64,000 nt of DNA from positions 620,001-684,000 of the forward strand of contig OZ251225.1 of the NCBI GenBank assembly GCA_965240325.2. The letters are read 5' to 3'. A model generated the notes under the pieces. That model was given only the letters and a program-made list of their open reading frames with translations, was not told where the DNA came from and did not search any database. Below are positions 2,048-12,086 of the stretch, piece after piece (position 1 is the first letter of the stretch; each line of letters starts with the position of its first letter). Position numbers and translations under genes: made by a program. This DNA comes from Rebecca billardiae RCC1528 (taxonomy: Eukaryota; Protista; Haptophyta).

Positions 2048-3697
2048 GTGGCGTCATAGGGAACCTATAACTGAGTGTCTATGAGCGACGCCAAGAATCC
2101 GGCTCGCACGGCATTCCTGCGTTGTCCTGTGCGCACCGCCGCGCGCAGGAGTCCTGGTGCGCTGCCAATCTGGCCCACAGCGGCGCACCTGCAGGACTCG
2201 GTTGGTTACCGCTCACATCGGATCGATCAGGCTTCGCTCTCGGGGGCGCCATGGGGCTGCTCACGACGAAGGCGCCGAGCTGGGCAAGGGAATCGCCTGC
2301 ATCGGGCACTGCCGGGTGCACGCTCCGCTGCAGGAGGTGCACCGCAGTCGCCGCAGCCCCTCTGCTCGGTAAGGTCGCTGGCTGTCTGTGTGGCCCGGCT
2401 CCCCGCCTGATCGTTCGGCGGCGCGACGTCATCATCTGTCTTCGCCGCGTCGCCCCTCATGCAATGGTCTCTTGCTCTCGCCGCTGTCGCGTCAACCCGC
2501 ACGCTTCATCGTTTGAGATACGCGCTCGCCTCGCGCCCGTGCGTCGCGCGGGTGCGGCGCACTCTGACGCGTGTCTGCTCGCCGCGCGTCGCGATCGATC
2601 GTGCGCGCGCGGCCGCGCAGTCCTCGTCTCTTCTATTTCTAAACGGGATTCATCAACGACTACTTGGACGCCCGCTCCAACTTATAAACGGGACTCGCGG
2701 GCGCCCTCTCGACCTCGGGCAGCAGCTCAACCGCCACGCCGCTGCCAGCGCCCGCCGTCGTTCGTTGCTCAAATCCCAACATAGCTAACCTGATCGTTCC
2801 ATGATTGATCATTGTGGTCTGTCTACTCCACGACGCCGCGCGCCGCGACCATCCAGCTCCAGAGTCCATTCGTACCCGACGCCTTGTACGAGCCGGGCAT
2901 GGCGGAGTGGCTAGACGTGGCGTTATAGGGAACCTATAACTGAGTGTCTATGAGCGACGCCAAGAATCCGGCTCGCACGGCATTCCTGCGTTGTCCTGTG
3001 CGCACCGCCGCGCGCAGGAGTCCTGGTGCGCTGCCAATCTGGCCCACAGCGGCGCACCTGCAGGACTCGGTTGGTTACCGCTCACATCGGATCGATCAGG
3101 CTTCGCTCTCGGGGGCGCCATGGGGCTGCTCACGACGAAGGCGCCGAGCTGGGCAAGGGAATCGCCTGCATCGGGCACTGCCGGGTGCACGCTCCGCTGC
3201 AGGAGGTGCACCGCAGTCGCCGCAGCCCCTCTGCTCGGTAAGGTCGCTGGCTGTCTGTGTGGCCCGGCTCCCCGCCTGATCGTTCGGCGGCGCGACGTCA
3301 TCATCTGTCTTCGCCGCGTCGCCCCTCATGCAATGGTCTCTTGCTCTCGCCGCTGTCGCGTCAACCCGCACGCTTCATCGTTTGCCCGCCCGCCCACCCT
3401 CGGCCTCTGGCGGATATGGAAGCACTGCAGTGTCAGCGAGCCATCAGCCTTAATCGACCTTGCTCAGTGACTGACGACTCGCGGGCGCCCTCTCGACCTC
3501 GGGCAGCAGCTCAACCGCCACGCCGCTGCCAGCGCCCGCTGTCGTTCGTTGCTCAAATCCCAACATAGCTAACCTGATCGTTCCATGATTGATCATTGTG
3601 GTCTGTCTACTCCACGACGCCGCGCGCCGCGACCATCCAGCTCCAGAGTCCATTCGTACCCGACGCCTTGTACGAGCCGGGCATGGCGGAGTGGCTA

Positions 3698-3700
<3 letters not shown>
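2048..3700. mobile_element. Non-autonomous dimeric element, copy 1 (unit A 2048-2916, unit B 2917-3700)
   Basis: Both units start GTGGCGT(C/T)ATAGGGAACC and end GGAGTGGCTAGAC and are joined with no spacer. Flanks are TTATAT on the left and (AT)n on the right. A near-identical dimer is at 10556-12086. Confidence 0.8.
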
Positions 3701-5134: not shown

Positions 5135-6244
5135 ATGGCCATCTCGCAGGCTCAGGAGCCGAACGAGGCGGAGGCACCCGCCGAGTACACGGAGGATGCG
5201 CTCAACGCGGTCATGCGGGCCGCCAATGCTGACTACAGCATCTACTGGCGCTTCGTCCCGCCAGCGCGCGAGGCCGAGGACGATAACGCGATCACGACAG
5301 AGCAGACTATGCAAGCGACCAAGGGCATGCTCGAATTCGCGCAGTACTGCAGCATGGACGGGGTGCTGATGGGGGGCTCGTCGACCTTCGCCGCGCCCAC
5401 GCACCGAGGCATCATGGGCGGTGTGTGGAGCTCGGGCGAGCCCTACTTGCTCGGTCCGGTCGGCACTGCCGACGAGGCGCGCTTCGATCGCAAGAAGCTC
5501 GCGATGTTCGAGCGCGTTCTCTCGATCGCGTTCTTCAAGCAGGGGGGCGGCGTCCTCGAGGTCGGGTCGAAGAAGGCGTGGAAGGAGCTGCCCACGCTCT
5601 CACTGGCCGACGCCAACGCGCAGGCCGTCGCCCTGCCCCGCGTGGAGGACGAGCACCTCGAGCACCTCGCGCGCGTGCTCGCGCTGACGGGCGCCGAGTA
5701 CGTCCTCTTCTACCAGCTGTTCGACGAGGTGGACGAGCTGAAGGGCGCGCGGTACGCCTCGCAGGATGGCGCGCTGATGCTCAAGAGCCGCACCTTCCCG
5801 CTCAGCCCCGAGGTCGGCATCGTGGGCAGGGCCTGGGCGCGGCGCGAGCGCTGCTTCGTGCGCGACGCGTCCGCGGCCGACCCGCGCGACTTTGTGCGGC
5901 AGCCGCTGGCCGAGTTCCACGGCGTGCGCTCCATCGCGTTCGAGTGCTTCGCGAACGGCATCATCGAGTACGGGACGACGCAGCTCTGGGAGAGCGCGCC
6001 AACCTTCTCCGTTGGCGATCTGCGGGCCGATGATGCGCCGCCAGCAATCACTGCCACGGCGCCCGCTGCGGAGGCTGCACCGGATTTGGCGGCCGCGCCG
6101 GCTGCGGCGGCTGAGCCAGCCGCGATGGCCGCACGGACCGTGTCCGTTGCAGCGGCACCGGCCGCAGGAGCCGCGCCGGCGGCCGCGGTCGCGGCAACTT
6201 CGGGCGCGGTAGCTGCGCCGGCTGCGTCGGAGCCTGCTGCGTAA
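5135..6244 (+). CDS. Protein with two tandem GAF-like (bHLH-MYC_N-type) domains and an Ala/Pro-rich tail
   Basis: Strong codon bias. Internal repeat: DYSIYW/EYVLFY, GIMGGVWSSG/GIVGRAWARR, R..LA....V.SIAF, GVLEVGS/GIIEYGT, as in MYC_N/GAF domains. Confidence 0.75.
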   Translation: MAISQAQEPNEAEAPAEYTEDALNAVMRAANADYSIYWRFVPPAREAEDDNAITTEQTMQATKGMLEFAQYCSMDGVLMGGSSTFAAPTHRGIMGGVWSSGEPYLLGPVGTADEARFDRKKLAMFERVLSIAFFKQGGGVLEVGSKKAWKELPTLSLADANAQAVALPRVEDEHLEHLARVLALTGAEYVLFYQLFDEVDELKGARYASQDGALMLKSRTFPLSPEVGIVGRAWARRERCFVRDASAADPRDFVRQPLAEFHGVRSIAFECFANGIIEYGTTQLWESAPTFSVGDLRADDAPPAITATAPAAEAAPDLAAAPAAAAEPAAMAARTVSVAAAPAAGAAPAAAVAATSGAVAAPAASEPAA

Positions 6245-6433
6245 GCTGGAACGCTCGTTCGCTCGTCGTACGACATCACGCGGCGTCGCGGTCGGCGACT
6301 CGGCGCCGTCAGTCAGCATCATGCTTCATCACCTGTCCGCGGCTGTATCCGGATAGTCAGTTCGTACGGTGTTGAACCTGATGGATGATTGATGCTACTT
6401 TACAACTCGTAACGTCGCGTGTACTACTCTCTG

Positions 6434-9400
6434 ATGAAAAACCTGTGTCATCCTCGGCCTGTGAACCGAAAGGGCTCCATCGTGCGTCAGCAAGATTCGG
6501 GCGAGATGCTGCTGTCCGCGCTCAAGGCGTGCATCTCGGCGCGGGCCGGCGGGCCGCCCATGCTGATCGTCACCGACCCCGGTGCGTCGGCTCGGCGCCT
6601 GCGCGCCCCGTCCCGCGTGCACTGCCGCGCGCTCAGCCACCCACCCGCCGCGCGCGCCCGCCCGCGGCAGGTCCCGACCCGGACGACGTGAAGGCGCTGC
6701 TGATCGCGGCGACGCTGCACCTGCAGGGCCAGCTCTCGCTGCTGGGCGTGGTGTGCAACGGCGGCGCGCAGCCGCTCGCGCGCGCCAAGCTCGCCCGCTG
6801 CATCTTCGACCACCTCGGCTGCGCCGTGCCCGTCGGCGTCGGCTCTGCGGGCAGGCCGTATGCGGCCGAGCCGCACGAGTACGCGATCCCGGGGTACGAG
6901 GGCGTGGACGAGGGGCGGCTGGAGGACGGCGCGGCGCTGATCCGGCGCGTGCTCCACGCCGCGCCGCGCGGCGCGCTGCGCGTCGTGCTCATCTCCTCCC
7001 TGCGCGACTTTGCCGACGCGGCGCGCTCGCACCCGGCGCTTGTGGTCTCCAAGGTGCACACCGTCGCCATCCAGGCGGGACTGGTGCGCGACGAGGGCGC
7101 GCCGGGCGGCTGGGCGCCGGACACGTCGGTGAACAACGTGTTCGACGTGGACGCGGCGGCCGAGCTGTACGCCTTCTGCTTCGAGCGCGACGTGCGCATG
7201 ATCGTCACCTCGCGGCACGCGGTGCCCAAGCTGCCGATGCAGGTGTGTGCGTGGGCGTGCGTGTGTGTGCGTGTGCGTGTGTGTGCGTGTGTGCGTGTGT
7301 GCGTGTGTGCGTGTGTGCGTGTGTGCGTGTGTGCGTGTGTGCGTGTGTGCGTGTGTGCGTGTGTGGGCGCGCTCGTGGGCGCGCTCGTGGCCGAGCGTCG
7401 GCGCTCACTCTGGCCCACGCGCGCCGCGCCTGCCCCGCTCCTCCCCCTTCCCCCGCGCGCGCGCCGCAGCTCGCGCGCTCGTTTGCGTGGCGCGCGCAAT
7501 GCCCGATCATGGAGTACCTGGCGAATGCGCAGGGGCTCGGGCTGGCGGGGCTGTGGCGCAAGCTGTGCGAGGGGCGGCTGCCCGCGCGCTGCACCAAGCA
7601 GTGGTACTTCGAGACCTTCTGCGGCGTCGGGCCCGCCGAGTTCGAGGCGCAGGGCCTCGACGCCCTCGGCGCGGACGCGCCCATCGGCGAGCGGCTCAAC
7701 GGGTACGTGAAGCCGTACGACGTGCTCACGCTGATGAGCGTGCTGCCGCACACGGAGGGGCTGTTCGGGGGGGGCGGGGGCTGCGCGGGCGGCGCGGCGC
7801 GGCGGGGCGAGGGCGGGGGACGGGGCGGCCGCGGCCGCGCGCGCCACCTGCTCCTGCTCACCGAGGCGGACGCCATCGACGTCTCCCCCGTGATCGAGCT
7901 GCTGCGCGACGCTTACGTGGAGGTGACGCTGCGCACCGCCGAGCTGGCCGCGCGGCTGCACGCGGCGGACTCGCGCCGCACGAGCGCGGGCGGCGGCGCG
8001 GAGGAGCAGGCCGAGGGCTCGTTTTCGCGCGCGGCCGGCGCGCTGCGCACGCAGCTCAGCGGCGGCGCGCTGCGCACGCCGGGCGGCTCCTTCAGCGCCG
8101 GCGGCGGCGGCGCGTGCGCTCCGGGCCTCTCCGAGTTGCGCCGCTCGCCATCCAACGGGCCCGCCGCCGTGCTCTCCGCCCTGCGCGGGAGGGTGGGCGA
8201 CTCGCCGGCGTGCGCGGGCGCGAGCGCGGTGCGCTCGCGCGCGCGGCGCACGCCGGGCCGCGCGCTCTCGCCGCTCGAGCTGCGCCAGCTCCTCGACGAC
8301 GTCGTCGCGGGCGCGAGCGCGCGCAAGCGCTTTGTGAGCGCCGCCGCGCTGTGCGGCGGCGCGGGCAGCATGGCGCTGGCTCTGGGGCTGTCGGCGTGGG
8401 AGCGCAGGGGGAGCGGCGCGCGCGCGGCGCTGGCGGTGCACCTGCTCGGGCCGGCGGCGCTCTCGCTGCGGCTGCGGCTGTGCGCGCTCAGCGGCAAGCT
8501 CGGCGCGGCGACGGGTCTGCTCGCGCTGCACCCGACGGACACGGAGCTGCGCCGGCTGCGCGCGGCCGGCTGCGCGCTCGCCGCCCTGTGCGCGCTGCTC
8601 GGCTGCTCGGAGGTGTGGGGGCTCGCGCGCCAGCCGGTGCCGGTCGCGCAGCTGGGCGCGGCGGCCGCGCCGGGCGGGCCGGGCGCGGGGCAGCGCGCAC
8701 AGGCGTACTGGGCGTCGTGCTGGCGCGTGCACACCGCGCTCAAGGCAGTGCAGCCCGCGGGCTGCACCTGCCTCTTTCTCTCGTGCCGCGCGCTGCTGCG
8801 CGGCCGCGAGGGCGCGATGGAGGCGCTCCGCGCGCTGTGGTCTCTGGTTGGTCTCTGGTGCGCGCTCGACGGGCTGGCGGACGCGCACGTGCTCGGCCGG
8901 CTGCTGCACGCGGGGCTAGCGCTGCGCGGCGGCGCGGGGGCGGGCGCCGCGCACGGCGCGGGCGGCGGCGCGGAGGGCGGCGCGGAGGGCGGCGCGGAGG
9001 GCGAGTCGGCGCCGGGCGGCGGAGGCGCGTCCGCGCTCGCGCTGAGCGCGCTGGCGGCGGCCCAGCTGTGCATCTCGCTCTTCCTCGCCGCCGTGCTCAC
9101 CGCGGGGCCTCTCCTCCGCACGCGCTGCCAGGCGGCCATTGCCAGCCTGGCGCGCGGCACGTGCGCCGAGTCGTCCATCGCCGCGCTCATCGGCTTCGGC
9201 TCGCTCAAGGTGCGGGCGGAGGGCGGAGCGCGCACGGACGCGCGCCGCGCGCGCGCCGCGCGCGCCGACGCGCACGCGCCGCGCCGCGCCCCTCGCTGCC
9301 GCCGCGCGCGCCGCGCGCCGCAGGGCATGATGAGCTCGGCGCGGCTGGTGCGCGAGGCGGAGCGCTCCTTCCGCCCCGCGCCCCTCGACGCGCAGGCGCT

Positions 9401-10373
9401 CGCGCTGCTCGACGAGGGCGGGCTGCTCGAGCGCGTGAAGGAGCCGTGCCACCGCCTGTCGCTGCCCGCAGCGGTCGCGCGCGAGCGCGGCTGGGGCGGC
9501 CTCGCGCGCGTCGCGCGCGAGATGACGCAGCGCGCCGACTACTACGTCGTGCACTCCGACCTGGACGCGGCGGCGGACAAGGCGGCGGCGCTGCGCGGCT
9601 TCGCGCTCAAGTTCTCCGCGCTGCACGGCCGCCCGCCCTCCGTGTTCCTCGACGTGCTCTGCGCCGACACGTCGCTTACGCTCACGCAGCTCCTGGCGCA
9701 CGCGCCCGTGTACCTGGGCAAGTGCCAGCGCGTGCTGCTGCTGTGCGGCGCGACGCTCGGCGACCGGCTGTGGCCCGCGACCGAGCTGCACGTCTGGCGC
9801 GCGATCGGCGGCGACCTGCAGACGGACGTGGCCGTGCTGCCGCTCGTGCCCGCGCGCGCGCCGCCCGCCGCGCGCCGGCTCGCGCTCGGCCACATCGCCG
9901 CGTCGTTCGATTCGTTCCACGTCGTGTACGCGCGCGGCAGCGGCGGCGCCGAGTGCGAGCAGCGGCTCAAGCTGTGCGTCGAGCTGGCCGGCGTGACGCA
10001 GTTCAACCGGAACGTGCGCGCGTACGCGCCGCTCGTCGAGCTCGCGCTGCTGTCCATGCTCGAGGACCTGCAGACGAGCGACGAGCGGCCCAGGCCGCCA
10101 GCGCGCTCCGCGCCCCGCCAGCGCGAGCCGGCGGCGGCGGAGCGCTGCTCGGCGTCACAGCGCTCGGGGCACGAGGTGGTGGACGCGACGTCGTCTGATG
10201 GCGCGGGCGCAGCCGATGCGGCGGATGACGAGGCGCATGCCGCCGGGCCACCCGCTCGCCCGGCCGAGGAGCACGCCGACGCGCAGTCGTGCCAGCAGCT
10301 GCTCGCGGATCTTCGGCGTCGCCATAAGCGGCACGGCGGTGCGGGTGCGCGCAGTCGCATGTTTACCATGTGA
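6434..10373 (+). CDS. Nucleoside hydrolase-like domain + multi-TM region + TIR-like domain; introns 6582-6670, 7243-7469, 9210-9323
   Basis: Splicing yields LIVTDPGPDPDDVKALL (IU-NH DxxxDxDD-type motif), PVGVG and KPYDVL. Hydrophobic helices at ~8340-9110. C-terminal YVVHS..D...K...VFLDVLC...PVYLGKCQRVLLLCG....RLWPATE follows the TIR-like pattern. Confidence 0.7.
7243..7364 (+). repeat. Intronic (GT)/(GCGTGT) microsatellite
   Basis: GTGTGC-type repeats start at the intron donor. Confidence 0.9.
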
Positions 10374-10555
10374 TGACTAGTGCAGGTGAGGAGTCAGTCC
10401 GGGCCCGGGTCGCGCGTCGTAGTCATCGTCGATCGTCATCGTCATGCATATATCGTATAGCGATTATACGATGATGCGCGCAGTAGATCATCATCATCAT
10501 ATATATATATATATATACTCATATATCGATCTTACTTATATATATATATGTTAAT

Positions 10556-12083
10556 GTGGCGTTATAGGGAACCTGCTATAACTGACGCCTCGCTCTCGGG
10601 GGCGCCATGGGGCTGCTCACGACGAAGGCGCCGAGCTGGGCAAGGGAATCGCCTGCATCGGGCACTGCCGGGTGCACGCTCCGCTGCAGGAGGTGCACCG
10701 CAGTCGCCGCAGCCCCTCTGCTCGGTAAGGTCGCTGGCTGTCTGTGTGGCCCGGCTCCCCGCCTGATCGTTCGGCGGCGCGACGTCATCATGCATCTGTC
10801 TTCGCCGCGTCGCCCCTCACGCAATGGTCTCTTGCTCTCGCCGCTGTCGCGTCAACCCGCACGCTTCATCGTTTGAGATACGCGCTCGCCTCGCGCCCGT
10901 GCGTCGCGCGGGTGCGGCGCACTCTGACGCGTGTCTGCTCGCCGCACGTCGCGATCGATCGTGCGCGCGCGGCCGCGCAGTCCTCGTCTCTTCTATTTCT
11001 AAACGGGATTCATCAACTACTACTTGGACGCCCGCTCCAACTTATAAACGGGACTCGCGGGCGCCCTCTCGACCTCGGGCAGCAGCTCAACCGCCACGCC
11101 GCTGCCAGCGCCCGCTGTCGTTCGTTGCTCAAATCCCAACATAGCTAACCTGATCGTTCCATGATTGATCATCGTGGTCGTCTACTCCACGACGCCGCGC
11201 GCCGCGACCATCCAGCTCCAGAGTCCATTCGTACCCGACGCCTTGTACGAGCCGGGCATGGCGGAGTGGCTAGACGTGGCGTTATAGGGAACCTATAACT
11301 GAGTGTCTATGAGCGACGCCAAGAATCCGGCTCGCACCGTCGCACGGCGTCAGGCACGGCATTCCTGCGTTCATCCCGCGCGCACCGCCGCGCGCAGGAG
11401 TCCTGGTGCGCTGCCAATCTGGCCCACAGTGGCGCACCTGCAGGACTCGGTTGGTTACCGCTCACATCGGATCGATCAGGCTTCGCTCTCGGGGGCGCCA
11501 TGGGGCTGCTCACGACGAAGGCGCCGAGCTGGGCAAGGGAATCGCCTGCATCGGGCACTGCCGGGTGCACGCTCCGCTGCAGGAGGTGCACCGCAGTCGC
11601 CGCAGCCCCTCTGCTCGGTAAGGTCGCTGGCTGTCTGTGTGGCCCGGCTCCCCGCCTGATGGTTCGGCGGCGCGACGTCATCATCTGTCTTCGCCGCGTC
11701 GCCCCTCACGCAATGGTCTCTTGCTCTCGCCGCTGTCGCGTCAACCCGCACGCTTCATCGTTTGCCCGCCCGCCCACCCTCGGCCTCTGGCGGATATGGA
11801 AGCACTGCAGTGTCAGCGAGCCATCAGCCTTAATCGACCTTGCTCAGTGACTGACGACTCGCGGGCGCCCTCTCGACCTCGGGCAGCAGCTCAACCGCCA
11901 CGCCGCTGCCAGCGCCCGCTGTCGTTCGTTGCTCAAATCCCAACATAGCTAACCTGATCGTTCCATGATTGATCATCGTGGTCGTCACTCGTCTACTCCA
12001 CGACGCCGCGCGCCGCGACCATCCAGCTCCAGAGTCCATTCGTACCCGACGCCTTGTACGAGCCGGGCATGGCGGAGTGGCTA

Positions 12084-12086
<3 letters not shown>
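10556..12086. mobile_element. Non-autonomous dimeric element, copy 2 (unit A 10556-11275 with ~150-bp deletion, unit B 11276-12086)
   Basis: Same termini, same A-then-B order and same orientation as 2048-3700. TA-rich left flank and (AT)n right flank. Confidence 0.8.

Follow-up and report, generated by a model that had tools for sequence, protein, structure and literature searches.

A predicted hydrolase-membrane-TIR-like fusion gene in the haptophyte Rebecca billardiae and its possible role in making and erasing an ADP-ribose-derived signal

We analyzed a 64,000-nucleotide stretch of the genome of the haptophyte Rebecca billardiae RCC1528 (GenBank assembly GCA_965240325.2, contig OZ251225.1, positions 620,001 to 684,000 of the forward strand). 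This stretch is referred to here as the window, and all positions are those of the window. As read from the DNA, the segment from 6434 to 10373 on the plus strand is one four-exon nuclear gene of a guanine-plus-cytosine (GC)-rich haptophyte. Its predicted product joins a XopQ/HopQ1-like hydrolase domain, a block of six hydrophobic helices, and a C-terminal TIR-like domain. We give an even chance to the proposal that the TIR domain makes an ADP-ribose (ADPR)-derived signal and that the fused XopQ-like domain hydrolyzes the same signal in cis. Full-text searches of the literature returned no paper describing a hydrolase-membrane-TIR fusion.

The exons were searched separately, and full-length modeling was performed on a transcript-derived homologue, P0158. 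By these searches the N-terminal domain is predicted to have a nucleoside-hydrolase fold and to belong to the HopQ1/XopQ-like clan. Exon 2 alone matched Pfam PF01156 at 40 bits (cut-off, 34.2; E = 4.9e-10) and positions 65 to 255 of the NCBIfam XopQ model NF041355 at 49.9 bits (E = 1.9e-13); exon 3 scored 20.1 bits against the NCBIfam model. The sole PDB sequence matches of exon 2 and of the start of exon 3 were the XopQ entries 7jlu, 4kl0, and 4p5f. The AlphaFold model of P0158 had a predicted local distance difference test score (pLDDT) of 82.4 and a predicted template modeling score (pTM) of 0.80. Its best four Foldseek matches were XopQ structures (E = 2.5e-14 to 1.9e-12; template modeling [TM] score, 0.69 to 0.76), and canonical hydrolases followed from E = 2e-7 or weaker.

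The aspartate motif of this domain is of the DXXXDXDD form rather than the canonical DXDXXXDD. HopQ1-like proteins are defined by DXXXDXDD, a modified calcium-binding motif (PMC11685791, PMC6019455), and the four aspartates of the XopQ motif (D116, D120, D122, and D123) are all kept in the window copy. Residues D120, L345, W361, F366, Y311, and Y398 of XopQ are those named as contacting ADPR, at its base, ribose, and phosphate (10.1101/2020.08.13.246413). Five of these six are kept in the printed alignments, namely, D120, L345 (in GLW), W361, F366, and Y398; the offset of 81 between XopQ numbering and the chain index of 4kl0 was inferred from four matches (L345, W361, F366, and Y398). A canonical salvage nucleoside hydrolase was ruled out by the motif type and by XopQ being the best match.

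For the C-terminal domain, a divergent TIR/HET-like family is the most fitting description. An AlphaFold2 (AF2) model of the window domain, built with an 86-row alignment, had alternating strands and helices (pLDDT, 95.9; pTM, 0.90). Its best 27 PDB matches in Foldseek were all TIR domains, including those of RUN1, TRIF, MAL, RPS4, RPP1, SPARTA, Roq1, SARM1, AbTir, and MyD88. VIA-align, which is independent of Foldseek, likewise placed TIR domains in all of its best 16 positions (Z = 9.7 to 7.5; RPP1, 9.7; MyD88, 9.3; SARM1, 9.0). When the family profile was compared with the PDB, it matched the TLR15/TLR2 TIR domain (E = 0.0029), SIGIRR, and a bacterial TIR, with D.YVVHS aligned to DAFISYS and L.LaGp...rLWC..EL aligned to VLFVLSPSFVNSCWCQYEL. 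In this match the candidate catalytic glutamate falls on the glutamate of the TLR15/TLR2 TIR motif WCQYEL. It sits in helix 94-105 of the model, which corresponds to alpha-C, the site of the catalytic glutamate in NAD-cleaving TIRs (preprint on eukaryotic TIRs). An earlier note on this DNA had pointed to a glutamate at the catalytic position of RLWPATE, and both the model helix and the profile alignment agree. The same note had placed a TIR-like domain at about 9530 to 9850; AF2, Foldseek, and VIA-align uphold the fold, and the domain in fact extends over about 9534 to 10064.

A language-model search with this domain gave haptophyte clusters labeled "TIR" and "HET domain (fragment)" as its nearest neighbors. 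Used by itself as a query, the C-terminal domain had no match in Pfam, NCBIfam, or PDB sequences. Its relatives were missed by two word-index protein searches and came to light only in an exhaustive search. The HET model PF06985 did not match the window copy; it matched 3 of 86 relatives, at E = 0.003 or weaker. The glutamate is kept in 56 of the 86 relatives and in 19 of 26 aligned fusion homologues. SARM1, the plant proteins RPP1, RUN1, and Roq1, Thoeris ThsB, and AbTir share with the window domain the beta-alpha order and a glutamate on alpha-C, and they are its best structural matches. The W-x-x-x-E-[LI] context of the window glutamate is also that of SARM1 and the plant TIRs. Unlike these catalytic TIRs, to which it is about 10% identical, the window domain has extra C-terminal helices and a WLD.LCAD motif recalling fungal HET domains, and the protein has no NLR, ARM-SAM, or Thoeris partner.

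Between the two domains, the hydropathy profile of 26 aligned homologues contains six conserved hydrophobic segments, and six long helices occupy matching positions in the P0158 model (pLDDT, ~86 to 95). The net charge of the sequences flanking and linking these helices alternates: +1.1 in the N-terminal flank; -0.35, +1.8, +0.35, +2.0, and +0.6 in the successive loops; and +2.65 in the C-terminal flank. Because of this alternation and the positive-inside rule, the predicted topology fits a cytosolic location of both termini and hence of the hydrolase and TIR-like domains. No signal peptide was found in the homologues. A luminal hydrolase domain with a signal peptide was ruled out, since the N-terminus is not hydrophobic in the window copy or in the homologues. 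Pfam was blank for the six-helix block, and a language-model atlas search with it gave no usable match.

Each part of the exon structure was compared with the homologues. Exons 1 and 2, joined as read from the DNA, encode LIVTDPG/PDPDDVKALL (the slash marks the junction), and the run T/S-D-P-G-P-D-P-D-D is unbroken in every complete homologue. Removal of intron 1 is therefore supported, since it restores the contiguous DPGPDPDD. The hydrolase halves encoded by exons 2 and 3 are adjacent in homologues (for example, residues 27 to 218 and 219 to 368 of P0003), and the NCBIfam XopQ model runs on from position 255 to 273 over the exon 2/exon 3 junction. Without intron 3, 10 residues separate GFG from L..EA.RSF.P. 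This spacing fits the 8 to 10 residues of the homologues, transcript-derived ones included, whereas the spacing is 48 residues when the intron is kept, which supports its removal. The open reading frame (ORF) 6582-10373 is open throughout 3.8 kb. From 7470 onward it encodes the second hydrolase half, the membrane block, and the C-terminal domain, so that no splice is needed to fuse these three parts. The first ATG is at 6434, with alternative starts at about 6507 and at 6560. A start at 6560 would give MLIVTDPG, of the same type as that of the homologues P0064 (MLIVSDPG) and P0002, and homologues start 5 to 25 residues ahead of the DPGPDPDD motif. The GC content is 70 to 82% in the coding parts and only ~58% at 6434-6550, with dips at 6250-6550 and after 10373. 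The earlier note had described three introns and three coding frames making one gene, with a nucleoside-hydrolase-like domain carrying DPGPDPDD and a membrane region. The reading of the DNA, the homologues, and the transcripts of relatives confirm the gene; the PF01156 match and the contiguous motif confirm the hydrolase; and the six hydrophobic segments confirm the membrane region. Coordinates are collected in Table 1.

TABLE 1 Features of the predicted fusion gene in the window
Feature	Position(s)	Strand	Details
Exon 1	6434-6581	+	Ends ...MLIVTDP plus first base of Gly codon
Intron 1	6582-6670	+	GT..AG, 89 nt; GT 6582, AG 6669-6670
Exon 2	6671-7242	+	First half of XopQ/HopQ1-like nucleoside-hydrolase domain
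Intron 2	7243-7469	+	GT..AG, 227 nt; rich in GT and GCGTGT repeats
Exon 3	7470-9209	+	Second half of hydrolase (to ~7940), low-complexity linker, six-helix membrane block
Intron 3	9210-9323	+	GT..AG, 114 nt; in frame, stop-free
Exon 4	9324-10373	+	Juxtamembrane helices, TIR-like domain, low-complexity tail; stop codon 10371-10373
Split Ca-binding motif D-P-G-P-D-P-D-D	6575-6687	+	D 6575-6577; G 6581 + 6671-6672; D 6676-6678; D 6682-6684; D 6685-6687
Lid/active-site residues shared with XopQ	7602-7721	+	W 7602-7604, F 7617-7619 (WYFETF = XopQ W361, F366); Y-D 7716-7721 (Y398 and next Asp); alignment to 4kl0/4p5f
Six conserved hydrophobic helices	8343-8399, 8472-8528, 8562-8618, 8724-8783, 8832-8888, 9027-9089	+	Hydropathy profile, 26 aligned homologues
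TIR-like (TIR/HET-related) domain	~9534-10064	+	AF2 fold, Foldseek, VIA-align, family profile
Candidate catalytic Glu	9783-9785	+	In RLWPATEL (9765-9788)

The predicted protein is a member of a large family found in pavlovophyte algae. The exhaustive search with the C-terminal domain returned 967 relatives at E ≤ 1e-3, in which this domain stands mostly at the C-terminus of proteins of 700 to 1300 residues. The earlier note had proposed looking for the same architecture in other algae, and both domains are present in 47 of the proteins fetched. These fusions come from Pavlova gyrans, Diacronema lutheri, Pavlovales sp. CCMP2436, MMETSP transcripts, and environmental contigs as long as a full ORF. 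Complete transcripts encoding the fusion include P0018, P0158, and P0161 (Pavlova gyrans) and MMETSP transcripts marked complete. The fusion relatives all bear the annotation "nucleoside hydrolase domain-containing" or are called hypothetical. The label "no hydrolase" is unreliable, because 12 of the 19 long rows that carried it open with the tail of a hydrolase domain and are thus N-terminally truncated fusions. In a tree of 86 C-terminal domains, hydrolase-bearing rows were not grouped (20 label changes, no better than shuffled). A pattern scan of bacterial and archaeal genomes with the hydrolase domain found no relative, and hence no bacterial hydrolase-TIR neighborhoods were seen.

Among complete fusions, the four motif aspartates and the Y-D pair are near-invariant. 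The aspartate motif and the glutamate occur together in 16 of them; about 5 have the motif only, P0023 and P0152 have the glutamate only, and both are degenerate in P0115. Both are intact in the window copy. ESM Atlas also holds haptophyte clusters that match the six-helix block and TIR alone. A diatom cluster of 81 proteins in the same atlas combines a PF01156 hydrolase with TPR repeats and may be another sensor-like architecture. In P0168, a Logan contig product of 947 residues, the order is reversed (TIR-like domain at 265 to 428, hydrolase at 489 to 815), which may reflect tandem paralogues merged into one model rather than a true permutation.

The chemistry of characterized relatives bears on what the two domains may do. 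XopQ homologues are reported to cleave the ribose-ribose O-glycosidic bond of 2' cyclic ADPR (2'cADPR) to give ADPR at near diffusion-limited efficiency, to be inactive on nucleosides, 3'cADPR, cADPR, and pRib-AMP, and, by cleaving 2'cADPR, to shut down TIR immunity (bioRxiv 10.64898/2026.06.15.732069). XopQ has been crystallized with ADPR in a closing lid (10.1101/2020.08.13.246413). Most non-TLR eukaryotic TIRs are reported to keep the glutamate and most such TIRs to be catalytic, and the one algal TIR tested makes 3'cADPR (preprint on eukaryotic TIRs). The fold, the DXXXDXDD motif, the lid residues L345, W361, and F366, and the Y398-Asp pair are shared with the type III effectors XopQ, HopQ1, and RipB, and XopQ gives the best match in both sequence and structure. 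Unlike these effectors, to which it is ~24 to 30% identical, the algal domain is host encoded and eukaryotic rather than a secreted bacterial product, has a membrane block and a TIR domain joined to it, and does not clearly conserve Y311. Algal sequences, Emiliania huxleyi included, have already been placed in the HopQ1-like (HLP) clan by motif (Piechocki et al. 2018, PMC6019455). These algal and moss proteins have the same DXXXDXDD motif; the published set was trimmed to the hydrolase domain, and a transmembrane region, TIR, and architecture go unmentioned there. Multi-pass TIR genes of Gephyrocapsa huxleyi shift in expression during virus infection and resistance (New Phytol 2025, PMC12489294). 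Their products resemble the window protein in coming from a haptophyte and in having N-terminal transmembrane helices ahead of a cytosolic TIR that carries the conserved glutamate. Unlike it, they were found by Pfam TIR models, which the window family escapes, and nucleoside hydrolase occurs 0 times in PMC12489294. The earlier note had raised NAD depletion or signal turnover by two N-glycosidases. Turnover is the better of the two ideas; the hydrolase is neither a generic N-ribohydrolase nor a hydrolase of nicotinamide riboside, since the characterized members of its clan left ordinary nucleosides uncut and are reported to cut the O-glycosidic bond of 2'cADPR.

On the cis reading, the TIR domain would be activated, probably by oligomerization in the membrane, and would cleave NAD+ to an ADPR-derived signal, probably an isomer of cyclic ADPR. 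Hydrolysis of this product to linear ADPR would then fall to the fused XopQ-like domain. With both activities in one chain, one polypeptide would make and erase the signal, and such built-in erasure might set a threshold, end signaling, or keep the signal local. The six-helix block could serve as an anchor, a sensor, or a channel. Single polypeptides that make and break second messengers include the CD38 cyclase/hydrolase, GGDEF-EAL proteins, and RelA/SpoT. The proposed logic of synthesis and hydrolysis would be like theirs, and the folds are unrelated. The paralogue expansion of the fusion family fits an immune or stress-sensing role. A fuller version is more tentative and in our judgment falls short of even: the protein would be a host-encoded eukaryotic "writer-eraser" in which a membrane TIR makes a cyclic ADPR-type signal, a XopQ-type glycosidase destroys it in cis, and the six-helix block is possibly a gated effector or channel.

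Several observations weigh against a protein that makes and breaks one signal. On the hydrolase side, the NF041355 score of 49.9 bits is far under the equivalog cut-off of 500, so the domain is not a XopQ orthologue, and the equivalent of XopQ Y311 is apparently proline, just beyond the end of the alignment. XopQ acts specifically on 2'cADPR, leaving 3'cADPR uncut, and 3'cADPR is what the one tested algal TIR produced. Glutamate loss and aspartate motif loss are not strictly coupled in this small sample of related rows, as several fusions with an intact motif have no glutamate. On the TIR side, the Foldseek matches are weak (E = 1.8e-3 and up; TM, ~0.4), and the window domain matches none of the Pfam TIR models (PF01582, PF13676, and others) at E ≤ 1. 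Weak Pfam matches occur among its relatives, 13 of 86 to TIR_2 and 2 of 86 to TIR, with a best E value of 5.6e-4. In the wider family, 30 of 86 members have the glutamate replaced. A domain that lies under every Pfam TIR threshold and that so often has another residue in place of the glutamate could be a nonenzymatic assembly domain or a death-fold-like adaptor, with the hydrolase as the sole enzyme acting on a substrate unrelated to TIR products. The three relatives that weakly match the HET model, for which enzymatic activity is not established, would suit this idea as well. We nevertheless consider such a scaffold unlikely, because the window copy and most fusions keep the glutamate, its W-x-x-x-E-L context, and its place on helix alpha-C. 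In addition, most glutamate-bearing non-TLR eukaryotic TIRs are catalytic according to the preprint, and the clan of the hydrolase partner includes a member that acts on a TIR product.

It is similarly improbable that the XopQ-like domain serves mainly as a sensor. Its ligand would then be an ADPR-type or nucleoside signal from another source (other TIR proteins or an infection), and binding would control oligomerization and activation of the TIR, the membrane block, or both, much like the response of SARM1 to nicotinamide mononucleotide (NMN) and NAD+ through its ARM domain. The ADPR-bound crystal of XopQ with its closing lid, whose residues are kept in the window copy, speaks for a sensor, as do P0023 and P0152, in which the aspartate motif is degenerate and yet the TIR glutamate is kept. 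The diatom hydrolase-TPR proteins resemble sensor architectures. Against this stands the near-invariance of the four motif aspartates and the Y-D pair in complete fusions, which argues for retained catalysis rather than binding alone. By far the least probable explanation is an artefact of the gene model or a pseudogene, in which long frames held open by high GC make two neighbors, or a decayed copy, look like one gene. Spurious long ORFs do occur on both strands at 75 to 82% GC, and intron 3 is in frame, so that its retention is possible. However, conserved motifs run along the whole frame and match the 26 aligned homologues, the fusion is also encoded by transcripts of relatives, the catalytic residues are kept, and the gene is flanked by the two GC dips.

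The surroundings of the gene were also inspected. Upstream, an ORF of 369 residues on the plus strand (5135-6244) matched Pfam bHLH-MYC_N PF14215 above its cut-off (E = 3.3e-9) and has an Ala/Pro-rich tail; a lower-GC gap of ~190 nucleotides separates it from the ATG at 6434. Directly downstream, 10587-12086 holds head-to-tail copies of an element of ~0.9 kb (10587-11479, with partial repeats at 11480-11764 and 11856-12086). These copies are 96 to 99% identical to the element at 2048-3700, noted earlier as a dimer-like noncoding mobile element. Microsatellites lie in and near the gene, at 7243-7370 in intron 2 (mostly GT/GCGTGT) and at 10440-10550 after the stop codon, where (TA)n and ATC runs have ~49% GC versus 75 to 82% in coding sequence.

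The occurrence of a natural fusion provides independent "Rosetta-stone" evidence for a shared pathway of XopQ-type hydrolases and TIRs. The previous basis of the XopQ-TIR link was one 2026 preprint on bacterial effectors. Paralogues that are missing one catalytic signature are natural controls. If the cis maker-breaker reading is true, the widespread eukaryotic HopQ1-like proteins would gain an endogenous role in ending or shaping TIR signals, and the finding would point to cADPR-type immune signaling in haptophytes, whose blooms are controlled by giant viruses. If the fuller writer-eraser version holds, the bacterial effector XopQ would be a mimic or a descendant of a switch by which eukaryotes themselves turn off TIR signals, and haptophytes would have cyclic-ADPR immune signaling with built-in termination.

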